Shown piece by piece: positions 4,978-61,432 of a DNA stretch of 63,802 nucleotides. The DNA lies in assembly GCA_964304625.1 (NCBI GenBank), contig OZ199840.1, positions 10,051,218 to 10,115,019 on the forward strand. Direction: 5' to 3'. The notes beneath the pieces were generated by a model that was not told the DNA's origin, searched no databases, and saw only the letters and a list, made by a program, of their open reading frames with translations. The DNA comes from Kudoa neothunni (taxonomy: Eukaryota > Animalia > Cnidaria). Numbering within the stretch: position 1 is the stretch's first letter; each line of letters opens with the position of its first letter. The translations under genes and the position numbers were made by a program.

Positions 4978-6932
4978 CAGTCAGTGACCGGTTTTACGTA
5001 CTTTTATGCGCGCGCGTCAGAATGAAAATATTCAATTGTTTATTAAATAACGTAATTAGAATGCGCCAATTTGGGATAGTATAGTGTTTAATCATTTTTT
5101 AAATGGAAGTAATCAGTTATTTTTGATTGAGTAAGGTTCCTTGAAATTATGTTGATTGTATCTTCTTCTAACGAAGCTAAGATGGCCGATCGATCATCTT
5201 TATGAAATTTGTTGAATATTTTTAACTCCTTCAAATAAATCAAAGCCTTCTGACATGATATTGGATTTATTTCCAAAATATCAATTTTTTTCACAATTCG
5301 CTTCATCATCACTCTCTACATAAAGTTAATATATATATAAACTCGAAAATTTATCACCTAAAGCTGAAGACTCATCGAATTTTTCAGAATATAGGGTTTG
5401 GACCATATTGATATTCTCTATTGAAGCTTCGTCGGCAATCATATCCTCAATTTCTTCTTGTAATATATTTGGATGAGTTATGTCACATATTTCAATAAAC
5501 TCTTTGTCGGGTGATATCAAAATGCTGTTAGCTTTGACAGGGACCGGTTGTCGAGATGAAAACCCAGCTTTTTGAAAGCAATTTATGATGGTGGATACGC
5601 TTGCACATTCCCACGCTTGTTTAATCAACATCATCGCATCTAAAATGGTTGGTGGAGTTGGTTCTAATCCCACCTCAATACATGAAATATATTTTTTGAT
5701 CATTTTCCTCTTATATGCACATTTGAATGAGTGAATAATCCCTTGATCTAGGGGTTGCAATAAACTAGTGGTATTTTTGGGTAAAAAGATCAGCTTTATG
5801 TTACTGAATAGTTTTTTTTGGTGAGAGGTTGCATTATCTAAAAAAATTAGAACATTTTTATTTTTTTTCGTGAAAATAGAATTGATTTTAGTTAGATATC
5901 TTAGGAAGATTTCACTAGTCATCCAAGACTTCTTGTTGGATTCATATAAAACTGGAAGGCTATTTATATTTTTAAAGCATCTGGGCTTTCGACTAGGTCC
6001 AATAACCAAAGGTTCAAGTTTTTCTCCGCTTAGCGATGCACCCAACAAAACAGTCATTCGTTTTTTAGACTTTCTTGTTCCCTTTGTATGACTTTCTTTG
6101 GAGCTTACATAACTTTTACCTATATAAAATATGCAGGTATGACAAATGGAAAAATATACCTCGTTGTCGTTGATAAAACAACGCGGTTTCATCTATATTA
6201 TAGATACAATCATCACTATATCCTTCACATAAGTTTTTAAGTTGAGAAAGCCATTCAGAACTTGTACATGGGTCAATGTCAGCCGCTTCGCCATGGAAAT
6301 TTATTTTTTTGAGATTAAATCTCGATTTAAAACATCGAAACCAACCGTATGTTGCATTTGATGGTAAATTCTTTTCTTTGGCAATTTCGTTTCTCTTATC
6401 AATGATGTCGGTTGCAGTTAATTCAATTTTCTTTGATCGCGCCCAGCATATCCAATTATAGACACATTCATCGAGGGAAATATTGGTGCCATCATTTAGA
6501 TTTTTCCTATTTTTACAAACCAATCCCCCCTCAAACATTTATATAATTTTCTCTTCATTTTTTAAAATGCCATTAAGAGTGGATATTGTTGATATATTAA
6601 AATGTTTTATAGTAGCAACCTTCGCACCTCTTGAGGTGATTCCATGAAAATATTTAATAATTTTATATTTCTCTTCAATTGTTCTATTCTTAGATTTATT
6701 TTTATTAGCCATTTACGTCACTTTTATGAAAACTATAAACCAATTTGGTCAGAAAAGGTGCGTAAAATTGGTAAATCACGTGATATTTTGATTGCAAAAT
6801 TTAGGTGCATATAAAGTTTTTTCATTTAAATTTATAAATAAATATGTTAGTAAATATATTATTTATTTGTTCATGATATAACTTGTAAAATAAATGCGAT
6901 ATTTAAAAGTACGTAAAACCGGTCACTGACTG
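4978..6932 (-). mobile_element. pogo/Tigger DNA transposon, full length, with an intron-containing and slightly damaged transposase
   Basis: Perfect 29-bp TIR CAGTCAGTGACCGGTTTTACGTACTTTTA with TA on both sides. Transposase at 6712->5088: CENP-B-like HTH, NIDETALFY, FLDNATSH, LQPLDQGII, C-terminal QSKITDYF. In-frame TAA near 6540 and a 1-nt frameshift near 5290. Introns at 6120-6159 and 5316-5357. Confidence 0.93.
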
Positions 6933-14200: not shown

Positions 14201-15168
14201 TGTGATCGTCGAACCATCTGATGGAAAAAAACAAAGGGAGTATTCTGTTAGGACAAGTATTCAGAATAAAAAAGCTTATGTTATAATCATATTATTTAGT
14301 AAATGGTGCTATTTCAATTAAGCATTATTTTGATCGATATAGTGACTTGACATTTGAAGTGGATTTTGAAGGAAAAGATGGAAATTCCAAATGTCCATTT
14401 ATGATTCAGGAAGAAATTGGAGAAAAACAGGAGGGTAAAATTATTACATGGTGTAATGATGATGAAGAATGTTCTACTAATAAATGCATCGTTAATATCA
14501 ATAACTTGTTGAGTGAAAAGGATTATATATTGAAATTGAAGGCAAAAGATCACTCACTCTATAACAAATATAGTATTAAATGTAAATATATGTTTAATTA
14601 TTAAATAATCCTTACTTTCTAATAATATATTTTGCGAAGACTCAAGAATTGGTAAAATGAAAGGGTAATAGAATTCCAGTTATCTATTATATAATAATAA
14701 TTATTTATTTTTAGTAAATTAAATTAAGTAATTTGCGGAAATAAAAATTTATAGAAGGAGAAAACATAAGGAGTGAATATGCCAGCATCGTAATAGAGGA
14801 TATCGTTCAGAAAGTAATACAAATGGTTGAGAACGGGTAAAAACAATTTTTTATGTCATATTTGTAGCATTATATATAGTAAAATTGTTATAATTTAATT
14901 ACCTGAAAAATAACAAAAATTGTAGTTAGTAAAGAAAATCACAACTACGATGCTGCAAAGAATAGTTATTCGTAATTTATATTTATATTTTCGAGTTTGA
15001 CGTTAGATAGGTCTGTTGGAGGTTACATGTAACAGGAAATATATATATTAGTTGTAGATAATCTCTTTTAGATTATATGCAATGATACCCATTGTGGCTT
15101 CACTTTTGGTGGTATTAGGTATAGCTGTTTACAGAAGGAATTCTAAGGACGCTTCTTATGATCTATAA
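8286..15168 (+). CDS. Giant multi-exon type-I membrane protein (~1,950-2,000 aa): three tandem five-exon cassettes of Cys-rich FN3-like modules, stalk, TM helix, short tail
   Basis: Starts MMMMRLSLRQRYFSTIYHVIFTL|VYA (signal-like). About 22 exons splice into one open frame through phase-1 GT-AG introns (e.g. 8353-8391, 8758-8799, 9328-9367, 9695-9735, 10380-10420). Repeated C..C-x5-9-C-x3-C plus L-x-P/x-x-T-x-Y motifs. Ends ILYAMIPIVASLLVVLGIAVY-RRNSKDASYDL*. Confidence 0.85.
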
Positions 15169-22413: not shown

Positions 22414-23692
22414 ATGATAAGACGTTGTTTTGAATTTATTTGCGTTTTGCAACTTTTGACTCACAATATCACCACATGTACAAAATAATAATATATAAAT
22501 TTCTGATATTCTTTTAGTCAAAGCATTTGATTCTTATAAACTGGACTCCGGTGAGTTCCCTTTTCAACCCGATGGCAGCACCAATGTTACAAAAATCCTT
22601 ACCAGATTCTACGTGAAGGAAGATGGCACTTGCGCAAAGTTTTACTATAAAGGGAGTGGTGGTAATTCCAATAACTTTGGTACTGAACATGAGTGCATGG
22701 ATCATTGTAATTATTATTAACTTTGATAGATTGTTATTTTGTATTTTAGTAAAAGATCTTAGTAAATGGGAAACTCTCCAGGGCTGTAAAGAAGGATATA
22801 TTGCGAAAGGTCCGTGCACCAAGAAGACCATCACTAAATGGGGTTATGCAGCTAGCACTGGAAGATGCACACAATTTGATTATGGTGGTTGCGGTGGTAA
22901 CAATAATCGATTTGGCAATGAAGATGATTGTAAAAGAGCATGCGAAGGTAATATTATTATGAATTAGTATTATTCAATTCTTTTTAGTGGATGATGAAAA
23001 AGCCCCTAATAAATATGATTGTGAACTTCCGCCGAAATATCCCATAAGTGATGAGGTGAAAATTGTAATAGTGAAATCACAAGACGACTCACAAACAAAG
23101 TGTCATTATGCTATAGTTGATAAAGCAGAAACCAGAGGAATATTCCCTTCTTTCAGCAAGTGTCTTTCAACTTGCTATGGTATATTACGTATAATTATGC
23201 ATACAATATTTTATTTTTTAGCAGAAAATGAGCTGATTAATGCATGCAAAAAGCAAGAACCACATCAAGAAAATAGTGGGTCTGATGTGGTTGTAAAGTT
23301 TTACTATGATAATTCGAAAAAAACGTGTTTGACATTCCTTACAAAAGGAACCAATTCAGTATTTGACGGAGAGAAAAATCGCTTCAATACAGAAGAAGAA
23401 TGTATGAGTTACTGCCCAGTTGCTGAAGGTAAAAATATCAAACAAATAAAAAACCATTGATCAAAAATTAGATAAAATAAAAGAGATGACTTATCATGTA
23501 TCAAAGGATATTTGCAATCTAACAGAAGTGCCCGTAGTATCAGGATCACTATCAGGGGTTAATAAATGGTACCACTCTAAAAGTGCCGACATTTCAACGT
23601 GTACAAGCATAACTCATGGGGGAGTTGGAGACATTACAAGCTTCTTTGATACAGAAGCTGAATGCAATGATTTGTGCGGAAACACGGAATAA
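22414..23692 (+). CDS. Secreted five-domain Kunitz/BPTI-family protein K1 (~356 aa, 6 exons)
   Basis: Signal-like exon 1 MIRRCFEFICVLQLLTHNITT. Introns 22478-22517, 22707-22749, 22948-22987, 23180-23221, 23429-23471, all phase 1. Domain 2 is canonical (GPCTK...FDYGGCGGNNNRF...C.RAC); domains 1 and 3-5 are degenerate. Confidence 0.92.
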
Positions 23693-29307: not shown

Positions 29308-32300
29308 ATGAATCGTCTATCAGTTATTTTTTTTCTGCAACTTTTGTGTCGCAATATCACCACATGTATAAAATAATGACTAATATATAAATTGCTGATA
29401 TACTCATAGTTAAAGCATTTGACTCGTATAAACTGGACTCTGGTGAGTTCCCTTATCAAGAGAATGGCTCCACGGATGTCACTAAAATTCTTACCAGATT
29501 CTATGTAAGGGAAGATGGCACCTGTCAAAAATTTTATTATAAAGGAAGTGGTGGTAATTCCAATAACTTTGGAACTGAACATGAATGTCTGGATCATCGT
29601 AAGTAATATTAACTTTGATAGATATTTATTTTATATTTTAGTAAAAGACCTTAGTAAATGGGAAACTCTCCAAGGCTGTAAGGAAGGATACATTGCGGAA
29701 GGTCCGTGCACCAAGAACTCCATCACTAAATGGGGTTTTGTTGCCAGCGCAAGCACCTGTACTTCATTTACCTACGGAGGTTGTGGTGGTAACAATAATC
29801 GGTTTGATACTGAAGACAATTGTAAAAAAGCATGTGACGGTAAAATTATACAGTAGGTGACAGGTCGTGGGCGCAAAAATAGGAATTGGGTTCAATGTGC
29901 CCACGACCCCCTCAAATGCTCTTGAACCGTCATGGCGCATTCAAGCAATACAAAATTTTAGTACGTGCTCTTGCTATTTAATCTCCTTTATATATCACTA
30001 TTTTTGTATTAACACCATGAAATATATTTAATAAAAATAAATTTTCTCATAGCAATGAGTTAGAGGTTAAATGCGATTAATCTAGTCGATCCTCGACTTT
30101 AATTTGTTTCTACAAATTATTTAGACAATGTGATGATAATGCTACCGATTTCTGTCACAAGAATTAAATAAAATAGTAAATACAATTCATACATCCAATT
30201 TTATTACAATCAACATTTTTTTTAATCATAAGGTTTAGACGATCTTCAATAAAAACATGCAGAGAAATTTCTTAATGAATAATTATACCTTAAGGAAGTG
30301 CTGTGAAACAAATAAATTATTTTTTGTACTAAAGAGAAGTAGTAGTAAGAATTAATAGTCAAGATAAATTTAATATACAGTATGGTCTCGATATTGTAAG
30401 GTTTGATATAGGGTAGTCGTTATTTTTTTCAAATTTCTGTAACCAACATTCTAACCTTTTCGATGCATATAGTCTTCTACTTTCGATTTATATCTGGAAA
30501 TACGAAATAATATTTAAAAAATGTATTTTTCGTAAAATTCAGGGTCTTGTTAAAATTTGCAGTGGTTACTTCAAGTTTAATCCGATTAATCCACTAAATT
30601 ACACATCCGAACGCTCGGTATTGTGAAAGAAACAAACTTTCGTAAAAATGTGAACAATTCGATATTATGATTCAATTACCTCAATCCGAAATACCAAAAA
30701 TTACACTATAGCGCGATAGAATACAATTAATTCAGTTATTGTGAGTTTTATTCGAATTAAATTTAGATTTTCTTTTTTGTGTAGAATTATATCTAATAAA
30801 TCTGATATAACGAACTCCAATGTTGTTACTCTCAGTAAAGGAATTACAAATAAAAGCTACACCCAACTTCAAATGGCGTTGTATGGTTGTATTGTGTCAG
30901 AACACCAAAAAATTCGATATTCTAGAATTTTTATCACTGGTTTAAGTGGAACAAAAAACTTCTTAAAAATTTTAAGATTCCGTGTTGTTTAAAAATTCAT
31001 TCTTCATTGAGAAGGAGAAAAGCTGATGATAATATTGTTAATGGTTAGGTAATCCAATTTTATTAGGTAAAAAATAGATCTGAAAAAGAAAACATATTAA
31101 AGCTCGATAAGACCGCTCTTCCCCAAGAACAGCCTACTCAACAAACATATGATATAAAGAAGAAGTAGAATTAAAATTTATAAAACAATCAAAAAACCAG
31201 TAATAGAATTGTAGAGTGCATAATTTAATGGGATAAAAATTTCTATATATTGTCATCGGTAAATTTAAAGGGACACCCTATTTTAAAGGAATTTATGAAC
31301 TTTCTGTTAAATATTAACGATCAAAAATTGATTGAATATCTTCAACTATACTCTTGATATTATAAGAACTCTTGATTAGTTGTTCGCGAATGTTAAGGAA
31401 AAGTTCGTATACTGTTGGATCGATGTCCCTCACATCTTTAATTCAATAATACAAACGAGATAGATTATATTTTTATTAAAAAATAAAATAATTATTATTG
31501 TTGCACGTGCGCGAAATATCAACAAAGGGTAGTGAAAGAACAGGTCCCGAATTAGTGGGCAATATCGAAACCTTGCTGTATATTGATATGCGTAAATTTC
31601 ATAAAATTAATTTACATACTCAATACGATATAACGAACGCATGTAATTTTCGATGGATTAAATCGGCTTCTATAAATAAACGTCAAGTTTTTCGATTTTT
31701 TATGCATAAAGGAGATTATATACAGGTCTGCGCAAACATCTCAATGCCGCAAAAAATACAAATTAACATCATACAATATTTAATAAAATTATATTTCAGT
31801 TTCACCATTTTAATATAGTTATAGTACCATAGAGGTTTTTCCTCTCGAAAGAGATATTCCGTACCCTGAAAGAACATGCCTAATCTTAGCAAAAATTTTT
31901 ACCGCGAATGAAGACAACGGTAACTCGAAGAATCCATAAAAATTGTCGGCAATTTTATATTGCTGAAATCTTTTTTTTAAACAATTTGAGTAGTGCATTT
32001 CAACAAAAGTTTCAGCATTAGAAAGTGAGCGTGCTGTTTGACAAAATTTTTAGAAAAAAACTTCTAGGTCTTGTGTAACTATCTATTATTTTAAATGGTA
32101 ATCCATCATACACCACTACTGAAACAAGATAAATCATTATCTTTTGATTGTTGTGATCTTTAAATAACAAAAGGGGGCAGGAGAGACACGCTTTAACGAT
32201 TCTATCATGGAATGATACTTCGATAATGCATATGTTTCTACACATGGTTTTGTACGTAACATTAACTTATAGTATTTGTAAACAAAATCATTTAAATAAC

Positions 32301-39278: not shown

Positions 39279-41238
39279 TAGTCGAGATTGGATATTGCGT
39301 AATTCAAAATTTTCAACGTTATCCTTTATAGAGAGTAAGTTGGCTTTAGGAAATTATTATTATCTTACTATGATGTAAATGCATTTGGTAATAAAAAAAT
39401 AATATAATACAAAAAGTCTCGTTATTATGTGGTTTTTTGTCGTCGATTGGTTTAAATCAAATAGTGTTTTCTTCATTATGCCCAATGAACACTGCAATAC
39501 TTCAGAGAAAATGGAAATCTTCCATTACTACAATTCGATAAAAATGTTGAAGGGCGCGAAATCAATGACAATTTCTAAGTTCAAATTTAGTGGTATAGTA
39601 GTCTTCTGTTGAATATTAATGTAAAATCATATTTAAGATCATTCAACATTTGATAGAATTCTCTCGCACCAACATAAATTCAAAAATACAGATATTTAAA
39701 GTAAAGGGAAGAGAGGAGAAGAGACATTCTGCAGGCAGATTCAAAAATATAGATGATGAAGTGTATGATTGGTTTGTTAAACAACGGTCGAATCGTAACG
39801 TTCTGTCGGGAGATGCCATTATCAAAAGGGCTTCTTATATTGCATATGAGAACAAAATTGCCAATTTTAAGGCCAAAATGGGAGGGCTTTCAGTGTTCAA
39901 GTCAAGATATGAGAAGGTTTTCAAAAAGTTGTTCCATGGTGAGGCTGCGAGTGCATATGTTGCATTAGTCGACTCATTGATTATTGAAAACATTGATTTA
40001 ATTAATGCATATAATCCAAAAGACGTTATAAACAGTGATGAAACTGCTCTTTATTATGAGCAGTTACAAAATAGTAGTTATGATTTAACGGAGGAATTCA
40101 AAATAAGGGGAAAATTATCCAAAAAAGGTGACTGTTTTACTGTTCTCGGCCTTAAATGTGGATAAGTTCCCATTAGTTTTTATCGGGAAATTTCAAAATC
40201 CTAGGTGTTTTAAAGAAGTTAAATATCTACCGTGTGAATGTTATTCACAAAAAAGCGCATGGATGACGTGTACTATATTTATACAGCTAATGAAAAATTT
40301 TACCCGATGGATGATAAATGAGAATAGAAAAGTCTTAATTTAGTCGGACCAATGTCCAGGCCACTCAAAAAATATTGATTGCTTTGAAAATATCAAATTT
40401 TTGTCGCTATTCAAAAATACAACTCCTATTTTACGATCCCGGCGATTTAGACATCATTCGTTGCCTTAAAAGCAGTTACAAAAGTTCAACTACCGATTGA
40501 ATGGTTTTATGCGAAGATTTTGTCATAAAAAAATATACATTGCTTGACTCAATCTTAGCACTAAATTTTGGGGCAGTATTCCGTCGAAAATTATTATTAA
40601 TTGCTTTAAAAAATCAAAAATATTGGGAGATATTAAATAAAATTACGATAATAATGTTATTATCAATTTATAGAACAAGATGTGAGAGAGATACCACAAA
40701 TCAGCAGCAGTTCTCAAGGTAATATTTTACGTATACCAAACGAATTTTTTTAGATAAAATCAAATATTCAGAAATATGTTTGGTGATGATTATGAAACAA
40801 CATGTGGGGAAGAAAATAATTTGAATTTATTGTCCATGAATGAAGAATCTGATGATAGCGAGACAATCATTGAAGAAATCAAAATTTCAATTAAACAAAT
40901 GAAAAATACAGTGAACGTTCTGAGGGAAGCTTTTATTAAAGATCTGTCGGATTTGTTTGATTTATAACCCGTAATGGAACGATTTTCAAAAATATCATGA
41001 GAAAGATTCCAAAAAACTAAAATTACTAGCTTTTTCGACAAAATTTTATAAATTACATTTAATCAAATAATATATTTTTATTTAAAAATTGATTTGCACG
41101 ACTTATCATCTGACGTAAGCACAAGAAAATCGTAATTTTATTGGTGATGCGCATGCGTAAACTAGATATTGTGGAAAAACTTTTATTGCGTGGTTATTTG
41201 CTGGTTCCGAATAACCACACAATATCCAATCTCGACTA
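39279..41238 (+). mobile_element. pogo/Tigger transposon with pseudogenised transposase
   Basis: TIR tagtcgagattggatattg at both ends with TA flanks; fragments DDEVYDWF, NSDETALYY, IGKFQNPRCFK, SAWMT and terminal KTKITSFF; frameshifts. Confidence 0.88.
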
Positions 41239-41525: not shown

Positions 41526-44523
41526 ATGAGAATAGCTGGACTTTTCTGTCTTGGTTTAGGTATCTCCCAGAATTAATTTTAATGCTAATGTAAGTTTAGG
41601 TGTTTTAATATCAGGTATATCCAATGCTGTTGTAAATTCAAATCCTCCAGTTGGAGCCGAAGCTTCACCTGCAGTTACACCTCCAACGAAAACGCTCAAA
41701 TACCAGATTGTGAAAAGTCCAACTGGTAACGCAGAAGTTATTAAACTCAATCTTGGGGGCTCTGCATATGTAAATGGCAAAAAATGCCTCCTAAGGCGAT
41801 CTAACGAGGCAGAAATTGCAAAGGATACTGGTAATACAGTAACGGCTGCGTTTATGGACATCAACACCTGTACTGCTAATGTTAGCGAGTCGGATGTTAG
41901 TAGTAAATGTGTTGTCAGTTGTGACACTGATACGAATACTATTGATTACAACAAGCTATCACCAAGAACCAAATACATATATGTTTATGTTGGCATTGAA
42001 ACAGCTACTCTTAAAGATATGGTTAAAGGAGCAGAAGCAAAAGTCTTCGGATATTCAATACGTAAATCAATTTAATTGATATGAAAATAAATTTAATTTA
42101 GCTTTATTGGCTAACCCACAAATTTCCGTGTCTACTGACACTAGTCAGCTAAAATTCCTAGCCAAGACTTGTGCTCCTGTAGATTGCCCCATTTATTATA
42201 AAGATATCAAATATGAAGCTGGTACCAAAGGGGGCGATTGTACTGCTGAGAATACTGCAAACAGGGTTGATTTTGATTTATTGTTACCGCATTACGAAGT
42301 AAGGTGTGAAAAATATCCCAGTTTCTTCTACAATATGCCCAATCAATATATGAAGAAAAACATAGACATTTATGAGCCTCAATTTTATGTGATTAAAAAA
42401 ACTGGAAACAAAATGGGAATTAAATTTACCAATTCACCCTCATCTGAAATATGCCTATTCAATATTAAAAATGGGCATGATTCAACAAGCCCCGAATCAT
42501 ATACGTCTGATTGTGGCGGTATTGATAAAATGTGTTATGCTCCTTGTAAGTATGTCGAACTCAAAGGCATTGCGGAGAAAAAGTTTTTTAAAATTTTAAT
42601 CCAAACAAGGCACCACGACATAACAACTACTGGTAGTAATTTGGATGGTTACGAACAAACTAAATTTGGTAACCCATACATCAATAGGCATTTTTATTAT
42701 TTTCTTCAGGATTTACTGAACCGAATGAGGGATTACTTTCTACCTATACCAATGCTGGTGTTACGTTTGAAGATGCTTTATTAAAAGTTAGAAGTTCGCC
42801 AATTATGACTTCATGTACTCTTCAACATTATTTCGCTGATAAACCAAAGCAATCCACCCTAGTCGATACAAAATGTGACAGTACTAGTACTAAGAATAGT
42901 AAATGCACCGATCAATGCACAAAATTGGTGATTCAGCAATTAGCAGCGGGAAAAGCCTATATGATTGAGATTACATTTGCAGGAACTAACGTTCCAGCGG
43001 GTTACAAAGAACATATATTCATAAGAACAAGTAAATCATTATAATTATTTGATATTATAATGAATTATAAAGGAAAGGGAGATAAAGCATATGGAACTGC
43101 TGATCCTACAAAGACAGACACAACAGTTTCTCTTACAGCTATTGGCGGAACTGCACTTCAAGATAGGAAAACAGAACCCACCTGTGAGTATTTAGTAAGT
43201 CCAGCTGGATTGGATAGCTTCTACCCCGTGAAGTGCAATGGCTACACCCCGTGTAGAGGAATTTGTAGGGATCAGGTTAAGATAGAGGATCTTGAGCCAA
43301 ACACATCTTATGACATCAGAGTGATCGCACATAAGGACTACGATAAAAAAGATTACAAAGATATACGAACAGGTTATTGAATTGAAGTTATAATTTATTC
43401 TTTAAATTTTTAATAGAATTAACAACATTGAGGATAACACACAAGATCACATTGGATGGTTTGTTCTTGAAGGCACGATTAAATTCCGTGGATCCAACTG
43501 CAACATGCAGTTATATTATACAAAAGAAGATTGGTATCGATTATACGGATTATTACACATGTCCAGAGGTGCCGAAAATAACGACACCAGTTGCCGCCCC
43601 AGTAGCACCAGCACCCGCTTCAACATCTCCTTCCATGTTAAGTTCTGCAGATCTCAACATAGCTAGAATTGCCATACCGACGACAGCAGATGATGGTCTA
43701 ATGTCAGCAGTGAACTCTTCAGTCGCAGATACTTCAGATACACATCTTGCTGGTGCCGCTGACAACACAAGCACATGTTCATCAAATCCCCTTTGCAGTT
43801 CCATAACATTCCCCGAGTATGAAGCAACTAATACATACAAAATTGTAGTCACAGCTATCGGAAAATCTTCTGAAAAAGAGCTTATCATAGAATCAAGTAC
43901 TACAATTAGTGTTTTAATTAATGTCTCTATCAAGAATTTCATAAACGAAACTTAAATTAGGTGCACCGAGAGTAAACCCAACTGATTCCTCAAAATTGAT
44001 ATCAGTCGTCATTACACGTGATGGGAACAGTTTCATTGTAACCACAACATATCCAGCCAGTATGAACGATAACTCAAAATGCAAATGGGAGTTACGTAAC
44101 AGTAGTGTCAAGTCGAATGCGGTAGTAAAATCTTGCATGGGAAGAAGCGTCGACAGATGTACTGCCTTTGTAACCTGTAAAGAATTCAAAATAAATGATT
44201 TACCTGATGGAAATAACTATTATTTGACTGTTTACAATGCTCAAGATAATAATATTTTCGGTGGAGCTGACATTCAACAAGGTATATTATTTGTTCACAG
44301 TGTGATTTAATGTTATATATATCGCAGGAGCAAAAAGTAGTTCAGGGTGAATTTAGTTAAATGCTTTTTTTAAATTTAATATTTTTTAGGGATAAAACAA
44401 AACTTATGTAACCATTTTTAAATGTTGATATTGGAACTAACATTTTATAGAATCATTATTGCATGCGTTGCTGTGGTTGTGGTCGTAGCGATAATTGGAG
44501 TCGTGGTTTTTAAGAAGAAATGA
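41526..44523 (+). CDS. 4-Cys FN3-like type-I membrane protein (copy B, ~865 aa, 10 exons)
   Basis: Signal peptide MRIAGLFCLGLGVLISGISNA. Introns 41560-41599, 42062-42101, 42669-42709, 43031-43072, 43373-43416, 43897-43960, 44282-44327, 44347-44389, 44408-44450. FN3-like IEDLEPNTSYDIRV motif; TM IIIIACVAVVVVVAIIGVVVF-KKK*. Confidence 0.9.
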
Positions 44524-50711: not shown

Positions 50712-51991
50712 ATGATAAAAGGTTGTTTTCTATTTATTTGCCTTGTGCAATTGTTGGCTCGAAATTCTACTGCATGTATATCAATTTGAGTAGCGTATTA
50801 GTTCTCTACTTTCTTCTAGTCAAAGCACTTGACTCATATAAACTTGACTCCGGCGAATTTCCTTTTCAGTCCAACGGTCAAACTGATGTTACCAAAATCC
50901 TTACCAGATTTTACGTGAAGGAGGACGGAACATGCGAAAAATTTTATTATAAAGGAAGTGGTGGTAACTCCAATAACTTTGGAACTGAACATGAGTGCAT
51001 GGATCACTGTAAATAATATCGATTGTGAAAGATATTTATTCCGTATTTTAGTGAAAGAACTTACTAAGTGGGAAACTCTCCAGGGATGTAAGGAAGGATA
51101 CATTTCGAAAGGTCCATGCACCAAGACTGTTTCTAAATATGGCTATGAAGCTAGCACTGGAAGTTGCACACGATTTGATTATGGCGGTTGTGGTGGGAAC
51201 AATAATCGATTTGAGAATGAAAACGATTGTAAAATAGCGTGCGAAGGTAAAAAATCGAGGAATATATTATATATATATGTTTTCATAGTCGATAATGATA
51301 ATAAGGCTCCTAATAAATATGATTGTGATCTTGCACCAAAATATCCAGTAAGTGACGAGGTTAAAATTGCAATAGTTAAATCACAAGACAGTTCACAAAC
51401 CAAGTGTCACTACGCCATTGTTGATAAGGCGGAAACAAGAGGAATATTCCCTACTTTCAGCAAATGTCTCTCAACATGCTATGGTATGTTTTATAAATAT
51501 GCATATAATATTTTTTTAGAAGAATCTAATCTGATTCAGGCATGTCAGAAGGAAATACCAGATCAGGATAATAGTAGTGGAAAAAATTTAGTTGTGAAGT
51601 TTTACTATAAGAAAACAGAAAAAGCATGTTTTACATTTCTTACAAGAGAAAAAAATTCAGGTTTTGAGGCGTCAACAAATTATTTCAATACAGAGGAAGA
51701 ATGCATGAGCTACTGTCCAGTTGATGAAGGTAATAATATTGAACAATTTAAATATATAACAAAAAATTAGATAAAATAAAAGAGATGACTTATCATGTAT
51801 CCAGAGATATCTGCAGCATGACAACACCACCCAGTGCATCTGGATCACTGACTGGCGTTACTAAATGGTATTACAATAAAAGCGCTAGCACTCCAGCATG
51901 CGAAAGCATGACTCACGGGGGAATTGGAGATATAAATGGTCTTTTTGATTCTCTCGATGAATGTACTACTTTGTGTGGAAGTAGTTCATAA
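50712..51991 (+). CDS. Secreted penta-Kunitz protein K3
   Basis: Same six-exon structure as K1; MIKGCFLFICLVQLLARNSTA signal-like exon; ends CTTLCGSSS*. Confidence 0.92.
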
Positions 51992-52629: not shown

Positions 52630-53530
52630 TAATTGCGCGGGATGGGAAGTTTTAGGAAATTATTCACCTTAGAGGACATCGACGATGTAAAAGTCTTTGA
52701 TTTTGCATATTTTCGTGAAGATAATTTATATACAATTTATGTTTTGCACCATCTTGGAACACTACAAAGCTACATGAAATGTTCGTGTGGCGCGGTAATG
52801 AAGATATCAACAAGAAAGTACAACCGTGATTACTACCAATTTAGATATGAAAATTGCCAAAAATGATGCTCAGTAAGAAAAAATAGTGTTTTTGAATTAT
52901 CCAAACTTCCTATATGGAAAGGTTTTCTTTTTGTGGTTTTCGTCATCCAGGACCTAACGGCTATTTACGAACCACTACAATTTTATTTCAAAATAGAGTC
53001 ATATGTCATTGTTTTTGAATGGAAGAGTATTATTCACGACTTAATGGCTTCAAAACATGATGAAGAATCCAGAAAAATCGGGAGAGTAGGAGTTGTTGTA
53101 CAGATCGATGAAACCGCCATCTCAAACAGAAAATACAATGTAGATAGAATATTGAAGAACCAGCAGTATTGGATGATAGACGGGATAGATGAAGATTATT
53201 ACTGTTTCTTAAAAATTTCCCGTCTTAGAAATCAAAATGCTCTCGAGGGAACAATCATCCAAAATGTTGAAAACGGTTCGACAATATGGGTAGATGGTTG
53301 GGCTGGATATAATCGACTGGCCGATTTAGGGTTTGTTCATGAATAGGTGATCCATAAAAGGAGGTTTGTATCGAACGAAGGTGTTCATACTAATCGAATC
53401 GAAGCTACTTGAGGAGCTGTCAAACGCAAATACAGAAACGCGACCAAAAAAAGTCCGAGTAAACTTGCCGGGATAAATATCCGATTTATTGTTTAGAAAT
53501 AAATATCAAAATAAGGAATTGAGCACTCTG
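52630..53530 (+). pseudogene. Merlin (IS1016/IS1595-like DDE) transposase remnant
   Basis: VVQIDETAISNRKYN...GSTIWVDGWAGYNRL..LGFVHE*VIH..FV...GVHTNRIEAT* matches the Merlin/ISXO2 pattern; N-terminal C-x-C zinc-ribbon word; in-frame stops. Confidence 0.85.
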
Positions 53531-60155: not shown

Positions 60156-61432
60156 ATGGCGAAACTACATTTTCTATTTATCACATTTTCGTTGTTTTTC
60201 CGTAACATTATCACATGTAAATAATTTATGTTAAAATTTCAATTTCTCATCTCTATTTAGTCAAAGCACTAGACTATTATAAACTGGATTCTGGTGAGTT
60301 CCCCTATCAAAAGGATGGTAAAATAAATGTCACCAATATACTCACCAGATTCTATGTAAAGGAAGATGGCACCTGCCAAAAATTTTATTATAAAGGAAGT
60401 GGTGGTAACACCAATAATTTCGGAACTGAGCATGAATGTCTGGAACATTGTAAACGATAACGCTTGTGACGGATATTTAATTCGAATCTTAGTGGCTGAG
60501 CTCACTAAATGGGAAACTCTTGAAGGTTGCAAGGAAGGATATATTTCGGAAGGTCCATGTACTAAAGAGGCCGTTACAAGATACGGCTATGTTGCTAATT
60601 CAAAAACTTGTAATTCGTTTGAGTACAAGGGATGTGGTGGAAACAATAATCGATTCATACAAGAAGATGACTGCAAAAAAGCATGTGAAGGTAGAACAAT
60701 TTAAAAAAAAATTTTAATATTTTTTAGTTGATAATGAAAATAAGGCGCCAAACTCATACGATTGCGCTCTTCCGCCAAAACACCCCATAAGCAACGAGGT
60801 TAAAATTGCCATCGTTAAGTCACAAGATAGCACACAAACAAAATGTTACTATGCCATTGTTGATAAGGAAGAAACTAGAGGAATATTCCCTTCATTCAGC
60901 AAGTGTCTTACAACCTGCTACCGTATATTTTAAATAAATATTTATTTTCTATTTATTTATATTAGCAAATGGTCAGATTGGGGCTTGCTCAAAAAATGTA
61001 CCCCATCAAGAAACTACTGCTAATGGAGACTTAGTTGTAAAATTTTACTACAAGAACACTGATCAAACGTGTTTGCCATTCCTTACCTACCAATCATCGG
61101 ATTCATTTAACCCAGCTAATAACTATTTTAATACAGAAGAAGAATGTATGAGCTACTGCCCAGTCTCTGAAGGTAACATTCTTTAATATAGAGTATATAT
61201 CACTACAGAAATAGATAAAATAAGAGAGATGACATTTCGAATAACTAAGGATGCCTGTAATTTAGCAGCTGCTCCGACAGCGTCTGGATCGCTTACTAGT
61301 GTAACTAAATGGTATTACGACAAAACTACCGATTCTCCAAAGTGTATAAGCATGAGTCATGGGGGAGTGGGAGACACTTCCGGACTTTTCGATACTGAAA
61401 TTGAATGCAAAAATTTGTGTGGAAACGTTTAA
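60156..61432 (+). CDS. Secreted penta-Kunitz protein K4
   Basis: Same six-exon structure, open frame after splicing; ends CKNLCGNV*. Confidence 0.92.

Follow-up and report, generated by a model that had tools for sequence, protein, structure and literature searches.

How are the 91 nucleotides at positions 14664-14754 removed from the transcript of a putative surface-protein gene of Kudoa neothunni, a myxozoan cnidarian that parasitises fish, when they appear to hold two introns, one of them lying within the donor site of the other? Positions are those of the window, i.e., the whole stretch of 63,802 nucleotides that was analysed, and all features of the gene are on its plus strand; in motifs, a slash marks a splice junction or, in brackets, alternative bases. 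A preliminary description interpreted the locus as a donor-disrupted spliceosomal twin intron, or [D1,2] stwintron, and every coordinate that it claimed matches to the base. Judged by its sequence, 14664-14754 is a real and conserved candidate for such a structure, and we consider it quite probable that it is indeed a [D1,2] stwintron.

The small exon upstream (14640-14663, 24 nt, x/AC TCA AGA ATT GGT AAA ATG AAA G) ends in phase 1 and is in frame in all paralogues. Its 3' boundary is spanned by GGGT (14663-14666), in which G14664 is the first base of the split outer donor, invariant in 28 of 28 paralogues here and in 22 of 22 at a second site of the same kind. The inner intron (14665-14714, GTAATA...TTTTTAG) has a canonical donor and acceptor and is of normal size, 50 nt compared with 35-58 nt for the plain introns of the gene and 40-50 nt for its counterparts in paralogues. 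T14715 stands directly 3' of the inner acceptor and opens the remainder of the outer intron (14715-14754, TAAATT...TTTATAG), whose terminal AG is at 14753-54; the next exon begins at A14755 (x/AA GGA). With the inner intron placed between donor nucleotides 1 (G) and 2 (T), its excision would leave a canonical donor, as at all 50 parsed paralogue sites: G14664 joined to T14715 gives GTAAAT, just as had been proposed, and the outer intron becomes a 41-nt GTAAAT...AG unit. GTAAAT is also, as claimed, a common donor; it ranks second among about 690 predicted introns in a 264-kb sample (the window plus twenty 10-kb pieces of contig C1, 0.65% of the genome), and it is the donor of three of the 17 plain introns in the gene.

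Once the 41-nt outer unit is removed as well, the product, AAAG/AAGGAG, is in frame. The exons between 9368 and 14835 are all multiples of three, and therefore all introns there are in phase 1, which agrees with the earlier claim. If 14665 is spliced to 14754 in one step, the frame is shifted and runs into TGA once the junction codon and six further codons have been read, so that the original estimate of a stop within six codons was essentially right. The alternative donor named at the same time, GT at 14652, is present and in frame, and yields a 12-nt exon and a 103-nt intron. Across the family, the nested arrangement appears to be the sole canonical GT-AG solution that keeps the frame in essentially all members, which supports the [D1,2] reading. 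The U12 donor motif (A/G)TATCCTT is absent from 14640-14760, the AT-rich introns do not allow a branch-point consensus to be defined, and in RNA folding the nested introns do not stand out from shuffled controls (z = -1.5 and -0.4).

The host gene was modelled by simple dynamic programming, with or without nested introns allowed, and spans at least the interval from 8391 to the TAA stop at 15166-15168. Of its 17 plain introns, the donors of which all start with GTA, 14 are 35-46 nt long, and the mode is 41 nt. When nested introns are allowed, the program chooses them at 14664-14754 and at 14836-14925; when they are not, it is forced into a 103-nt intron at the first site and needs, at the second, an 11-nt exon that is in frame by chance only. 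The last ectodomain exon (14300-14581, 282 nt, phase 1 at both ends) corresponds to a cysteine-bearing, FN3-like β-sandwich, and is followed by a plain intron of 58 nt (14582-14639, GTAAAT...GCGAAG), the acceptor of which is supported by the split Tyr codon T/AC, replaced by the synonymous T/AT in paralogue L005. Beyond the small exon and the first nested intron lies an exon of 81 nt (14755-14835, phase 1 at both ends), whose coding sequence, GENIRSEY..., is conserved in paralogues. The C-terminal exons modelled after the second nested intron are at 14926-14971, 15011-15028 and 15072-15165, with plain introns at 14972-15010 and 15029-15071; the last exon encodes a transmembrane helix, the hydrophobic stretch of which is conserved in paralogues, and a short tail.

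Pfam searches of the gene detect weak FN3 matches and nothing else. For the 93-residue exon, AlphaFold, given 23 paralogues, models a β-sandwich of seven strands (pLDDT 83), for which FN3 domains are the best but weak matches in fold comparison (TM 0.5-0.66, E about 0.01-0.05). No relatives of this exon are found in a collection of 15 billion proteins, which returned two spurious weak matches. Sequence and predicted fold together suggest that the gene encodes a modular, FN3-like, single-pass surface protein of the myxozoan.

The spacing of AG dinucleotides bears directly on how the locus may be spliced. Fifteen of the gene's 17 plain introns end at the first AG that lies 35 nt or more from the donor. 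Counted from GT 14665, the first such AG is at 50 nt, and a one-step splice to 14754 would skip the AGs at 50 and 64 nt; a splice from GT 14652 to 14754 would skip those at 63 and 77 nt. The regenerated donor finds its first suitably distant AG at 41 nt. At the first site, both halves comply with this rule in 28 of 28 copies; at the second site the rule is looser, with 20 of 22 inner halves and 14 of 22 outer halves complying. One-step splices in the family would skip one to three suitably spaced AGs. A one-step splice of 90 or 103 nt would, therefore, be atypical of a gene in which plain introns have the lengths given above and mostly use the first AG. According to a 2026 study of myxozoan splice signals, only 'GTa' is left of the donor and 'AG' of the acceptor (PMC13644364); the paper says nothing of nested, twin or recursive introns. 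Signals so reduced fit splicing that is largely governed by spacing.

The 93-residue exon has at least 67 exon-level matches in the same 40.3-Mb genome. We read 29 copies and one more distant relative, parsing 28 at the first site and 22 at the second, the latter number being that of the copies that the parser could anchor; L022 (G000:C2:6214580-6216100) was left out because of a run of N just after the first nested intron begins. All 28 paralogues parsed at the first site (79% to about 41% protein identity) have the structure N/G[GT(A/G)...AG]T(A/G)...AG/, with an inner part of 40-50 nt and an outer acceptor AG at 39-45 nt, mostly ATAG. The remaining intron sequence is not alignable between distant copies, and the nested structure is kept regardless. 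The base before the invariant G is G in 24 copies, A in three and C in one. The inner AG is followed by T(A/G) in all 50 parsed sites, usually as TAAAT, and is preceded by T at position -3 in all 50 as well; the junction reads AG/TA in 47 sites, AG/TG in three, and the ratchet-type AG/GT in none. The regenerated donors (GTAAAT, GTAACT, GTAATT, GTATAT, GTGAAT and others) are of the kinds found in ordinary introns. Among the approximately 690 predicted introns of the 264-kb sample, G stands at position -1 of the donor in only 27%, and TA or TG follows the acceptor in only 12%.

Run on that sample, the gene-model program placed real nested introns at two sites, both in this gene, and nowhere else; four decoy definitions were used one to seven times each on the same 264 kb. 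The low number of decoy calls, together with the presence of the pattern in 28 of 28 and 22 of 22 parsed copies, indicates that the nested structure is more than chance, with the proviso that these fractions overstate the number of independent events since the paralogues share ancestry. In the divergent relative at C3:2222979-2223202, the exon sequences are quite different and both nested structures are still found ahead of the membrane anchor. When the whole genome was searched with a consensus of the family, 41 of 55 distinct sites are in the family and the rest look like chance, and the raw matches number 80 for the consensus and 157 for a reversed control. No stwintrons were found outside the family in the 264-kb sample, within which they appear to be confined to it.

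The outer part behaves as non-coding sequence, because its length is not always a multiple of three, changing by 1-2 nt between copies with 1-nt indels even between close ones, and because it carries stop codons in L001, L002 and L005. In nine copies (L003, L004, L006, L008-L011, L016 and L017) it is 42 nt long and open in frame, and its retention would add 14 residues; in these copies a skipped second step would produce an insertion, not a truncation, and may therefore act as an isoform switch. In one copy, L014 (G000:C2:9716886-9718400), the 81-nt exon lacks its seven initial codons, and the frame is kept only if about 110 nt are spliced out in a single step; the copy may be decaying, or its stwintron may have been resolved.

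The second candidate [D1,2] nested intron, at 14836-14925, is built in the same way: G14836 is followed by an inner intron of 43 nt (14837-14879) and by the outer remainder (14880-14925, TAAAAT...AG), the outer unit measuring 47 nt with G14836 included. All 22 copies parsed here retain the structure (inner part 39-49 nt, outer part 38-49 nt). A plain alternative exists in this copy, GT 14837 to AG 14929, which is 93 nt long and in frame; the AG at 14929 is missing in L002, L005, L009 and L011. The two nested introns thus flank the symmetric 81-nt exon, just ahead of the membrane anchor, like a pair of bookends.

Several other ways of splicing the first site have to be weighed. The main product of this copy might come from the plain 103-nt intron that runs from GT 14652 to 14754, the nested appearance being incidental; we regard this as unlikely. 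The GTAAAA donor is among the common ones and looks good in this copy, a GT is found at the same position in L002, L004, L005, L009 and L012, and the product would be in frame, but the position is occupied by GTC (GGTCAA) in the close copies (75-80% identity) L003 and L006-L008 and in the slightly more divergent L011, and by GTG (GGTGAA) in L010, and in most of the distant paralogues (e.g., L013, L015, L023-L029) the small exon contains no GT except that of G/GT. Copies such as those at C1:1902357 and C2:9624190 offer no canonical one-step route. The AAA codon, moreover, is replaced by CAA or GAA in other copies, which looks like variation of the coding type; the intron would be 2.5 times the local norm; and the invariant internal AG/T(A/G) would be left without explanation. 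As an alternative donor in this copy, GT 14652 could give an isoform shorter by four residues. Very unlikely, in our view, is a single non-canonical splice of the whole 91 nt, an apparent GG-AG intron in which the internal AG/TA is kept for another reason, for example as an intronic signal. Its mature product would be identical to that of the nested route, myxozoan splice signals are minimal (PMC13644364), and L014 seems to need a long one-step splice, yet all 17 other introns of the gene begin with GTA, and the internal element resembles a full acceptor followed by a donor, down to the T at -3 and the T(A/G) in every site parsed. This element is also 38-49 nt from the 3' end, presumably too far upstream for a branch site, and folding reveals no special structure.

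The least probable of these alternatives, with hardly any weight in our estimate, is removal of the inner intron alone. The frame would then read GGT AAA TTA AAT TAA and stop in the retained piece (...GKLN), leaving a secreted ectodomain with the anchor exons unjoined in this copy, and the symmetric exons would permit such isoform variety. Against this stand the downstream exons and the transmembrane helix, which are conserved and open in 28 paralogues and, therefore, translated in some transcript, while no canonical in-frame route but the nested one leads to them. A few more splices were tried and rejected: the GT at 14573, which in combination with 14754 is in frame here, is missing in L009 and L010, and the splices 14582 to 14754, 14582 to 14646, and the inner intron combined with GT 14728 all hit stops.

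In the [D1,2] stwintron reading, the second intron is without a usable donor until the first has been removed, and the frame into the downstream exons requires that both be removed. As one intron is inside the donor of the other, removal would proceed in two ordered steps, the order itself being inferred. The first-AG rule implies that the inner unit should go like any other intron, after which only the G/T donor restores the frame. In mechanistic terms, the spliceosome here would read little beyond GTA and an AG some 35-50 nt further on, and with recognition so minimal GT 14665 should take as its partner the nearest AG at such a distance, 14713-14. The first ligation would create ...AAAG/GTAAAT; the intermediate that lacks only 14665-14714 would read ...AAAGG/TAAATT.... 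In a second round, the new donor would be paired with AG 14753-54, and 41 nt that include G14664 would be removed, leaving AAAG/AAGGAG. The nested model predicts the mature junction AAATGAAAG/AAGGAGAAAAC, with AAATGAAAG/AAGGAG in the product, and a cDNA made by this route would contain GGTAAAATGAAAG joined to AAGGAG. The same two steps would operate at 14836-14925. A much more tentative proposal, doubtful at present, is that myxozoan spliceosomes measure distance, such that a longer intervening sequence can be removed only as nested short introns, and that the tandem stwintrons around the symmetric 81-nt exon make up a conserved two-step checkpoint, by which each member of the variable family would be either membrane-anchored (both steps completed) or truncated and secreted (second step omitted).

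In the literature that we searched, every stwintron described is fungal and none is from an animal, and the structure at 14664-14754, as read from its sequence, is probably the first animal example. [D1,2] stwintrons of ascomycetes are known from Aspergillus, Hypoxylaceae and Xylariaceae (Flipphi, Fekete, Karaffa et al.; PMC5639578, PMC9024468, PMC12403724, PMC6616335), and the authors of the fungal work saw no reason against their occurrence in other kingdoms (PMC6616335). The Kudoa structure shares with them an internal U2-type intron between G1 and T2 of the external donor, an external donor that would exist only after the first excision, and two short units of the intron-definition kind. 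It differs from them in its host, a myxozoan cnidarian, and in that the branch-point consensus is not recognisable; it also occurs as a tandem pair flanking a single exon of 81 nt, and its positions are fixed in a family of at least 60 paralogous genes, whereas the known fungal cases are sequence-similar 'sister' copies that occupy new positions.

Recursive splicing at ratchet points is reportedly treated by Sibley et al. in a paper of 2015. Ratchet-type recursive splicing in Drosophila and vertebrates (Burnette et al. 2005) is similar to the process proposed here in that the sequence is removed in succession, with a 5' splice site regenerated after the first ligation. Ratchet sites, however, are AG/GT, i.e., a complete donor abuts the acceptor, and they subdivide very long introns. 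The Kudoa junction is instead AG/TA, with the missing G supplied from upstream of the first donor, so that one base would be spliced in as exon and then removed in step two, and the total is 91 nt. U2/U12 twintrons of insects and vertebrates (PMC3564746) are likewise pairs of spliceosomal introns that share one position in an animal gene, but they are alternative, competing introns of two spliceosome types, whereas the Kudoa pair would be obligatory and ordered, and has no U12-type donor.

If true, conservation of a stwintron pair across a gene family would mean that obligatory ordered splicing can be stable over long evolutionary time, and a host whose signals are reportedly reduced to GTA and AG would be a natural setting for studying intron definition by spacing alone. 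A gene predictor that accepts GT-AG introns and no others has no means of connecting the ectodomain with the anchor, and the members of this large family are therefore likely to be annotated wrongly, as truncated or as secreted proteins. The genes of the published Kudoa neothunni assembly, obtained from yellowfin tuna data, were predicted from protein hints only (PMC12239612).

The published assembly is 40.2 Mb with 30.4% genomic GC, in three chromosome scaffolds and a circular mitochondrial contig (PMC12239612). The assembly analysed has 40,260,978 bases in three large contigs (17.2, 12.0 and 11.0 Mb) and one of 18.2 kb, and GC content is 30.5% in the 264-kb sample. That the host is an animal, as had been claimed, is borne out by its HSP70, which is 76-78% identical to animal HSC70; this gene is intronless, and no match is closer than the animal HSC70 proteins. 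The 18.2-kb contig is mitochondrial (43% GC, compared with about 30% in the nuclear part). TGA is read as Trp in its code, and AGA occurs at conserved arginine positions of cox1, as in the non-bilaterian animal code; its proteins are very divergent (L031, G000:C4:1-10000), and Rfam finds no tRNA or rRNA in its first 10 kb. Two U1 snRNA genes lie head to head at G000:C2:670702-671375 (110 and 90 bits). Rfam and tRNA scans of the window give no matches. Rfam SL1 has none in the genome either, a negative that carries no information since the controls also gave none.

The window contains, in addition, several features apart from this gene. A DDE_1 pogo-like transposase ORF remnant is found at 5326-6192 on the minus strand (E = 6e-38), and further transposase remnants, a DNA-binding domain of the Tc5 type and a weak piece resembling ISXO2, are at 39650-40165 and 52933-53346 on the plus strand. 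Kunitz/BPTI domains are present in four open frames on the plus strand (22987-23460, 29515-29856, 50958-51770 and 60366-60704; E = 6e-9 to 4e-18), which suggests a dispersed array of Kunitz genes in the window. Finally, a run of open frames at 41710-44310 on the plus strand, with a weak FN3 match at 43060-43380, may be another modular surface-protein gene.
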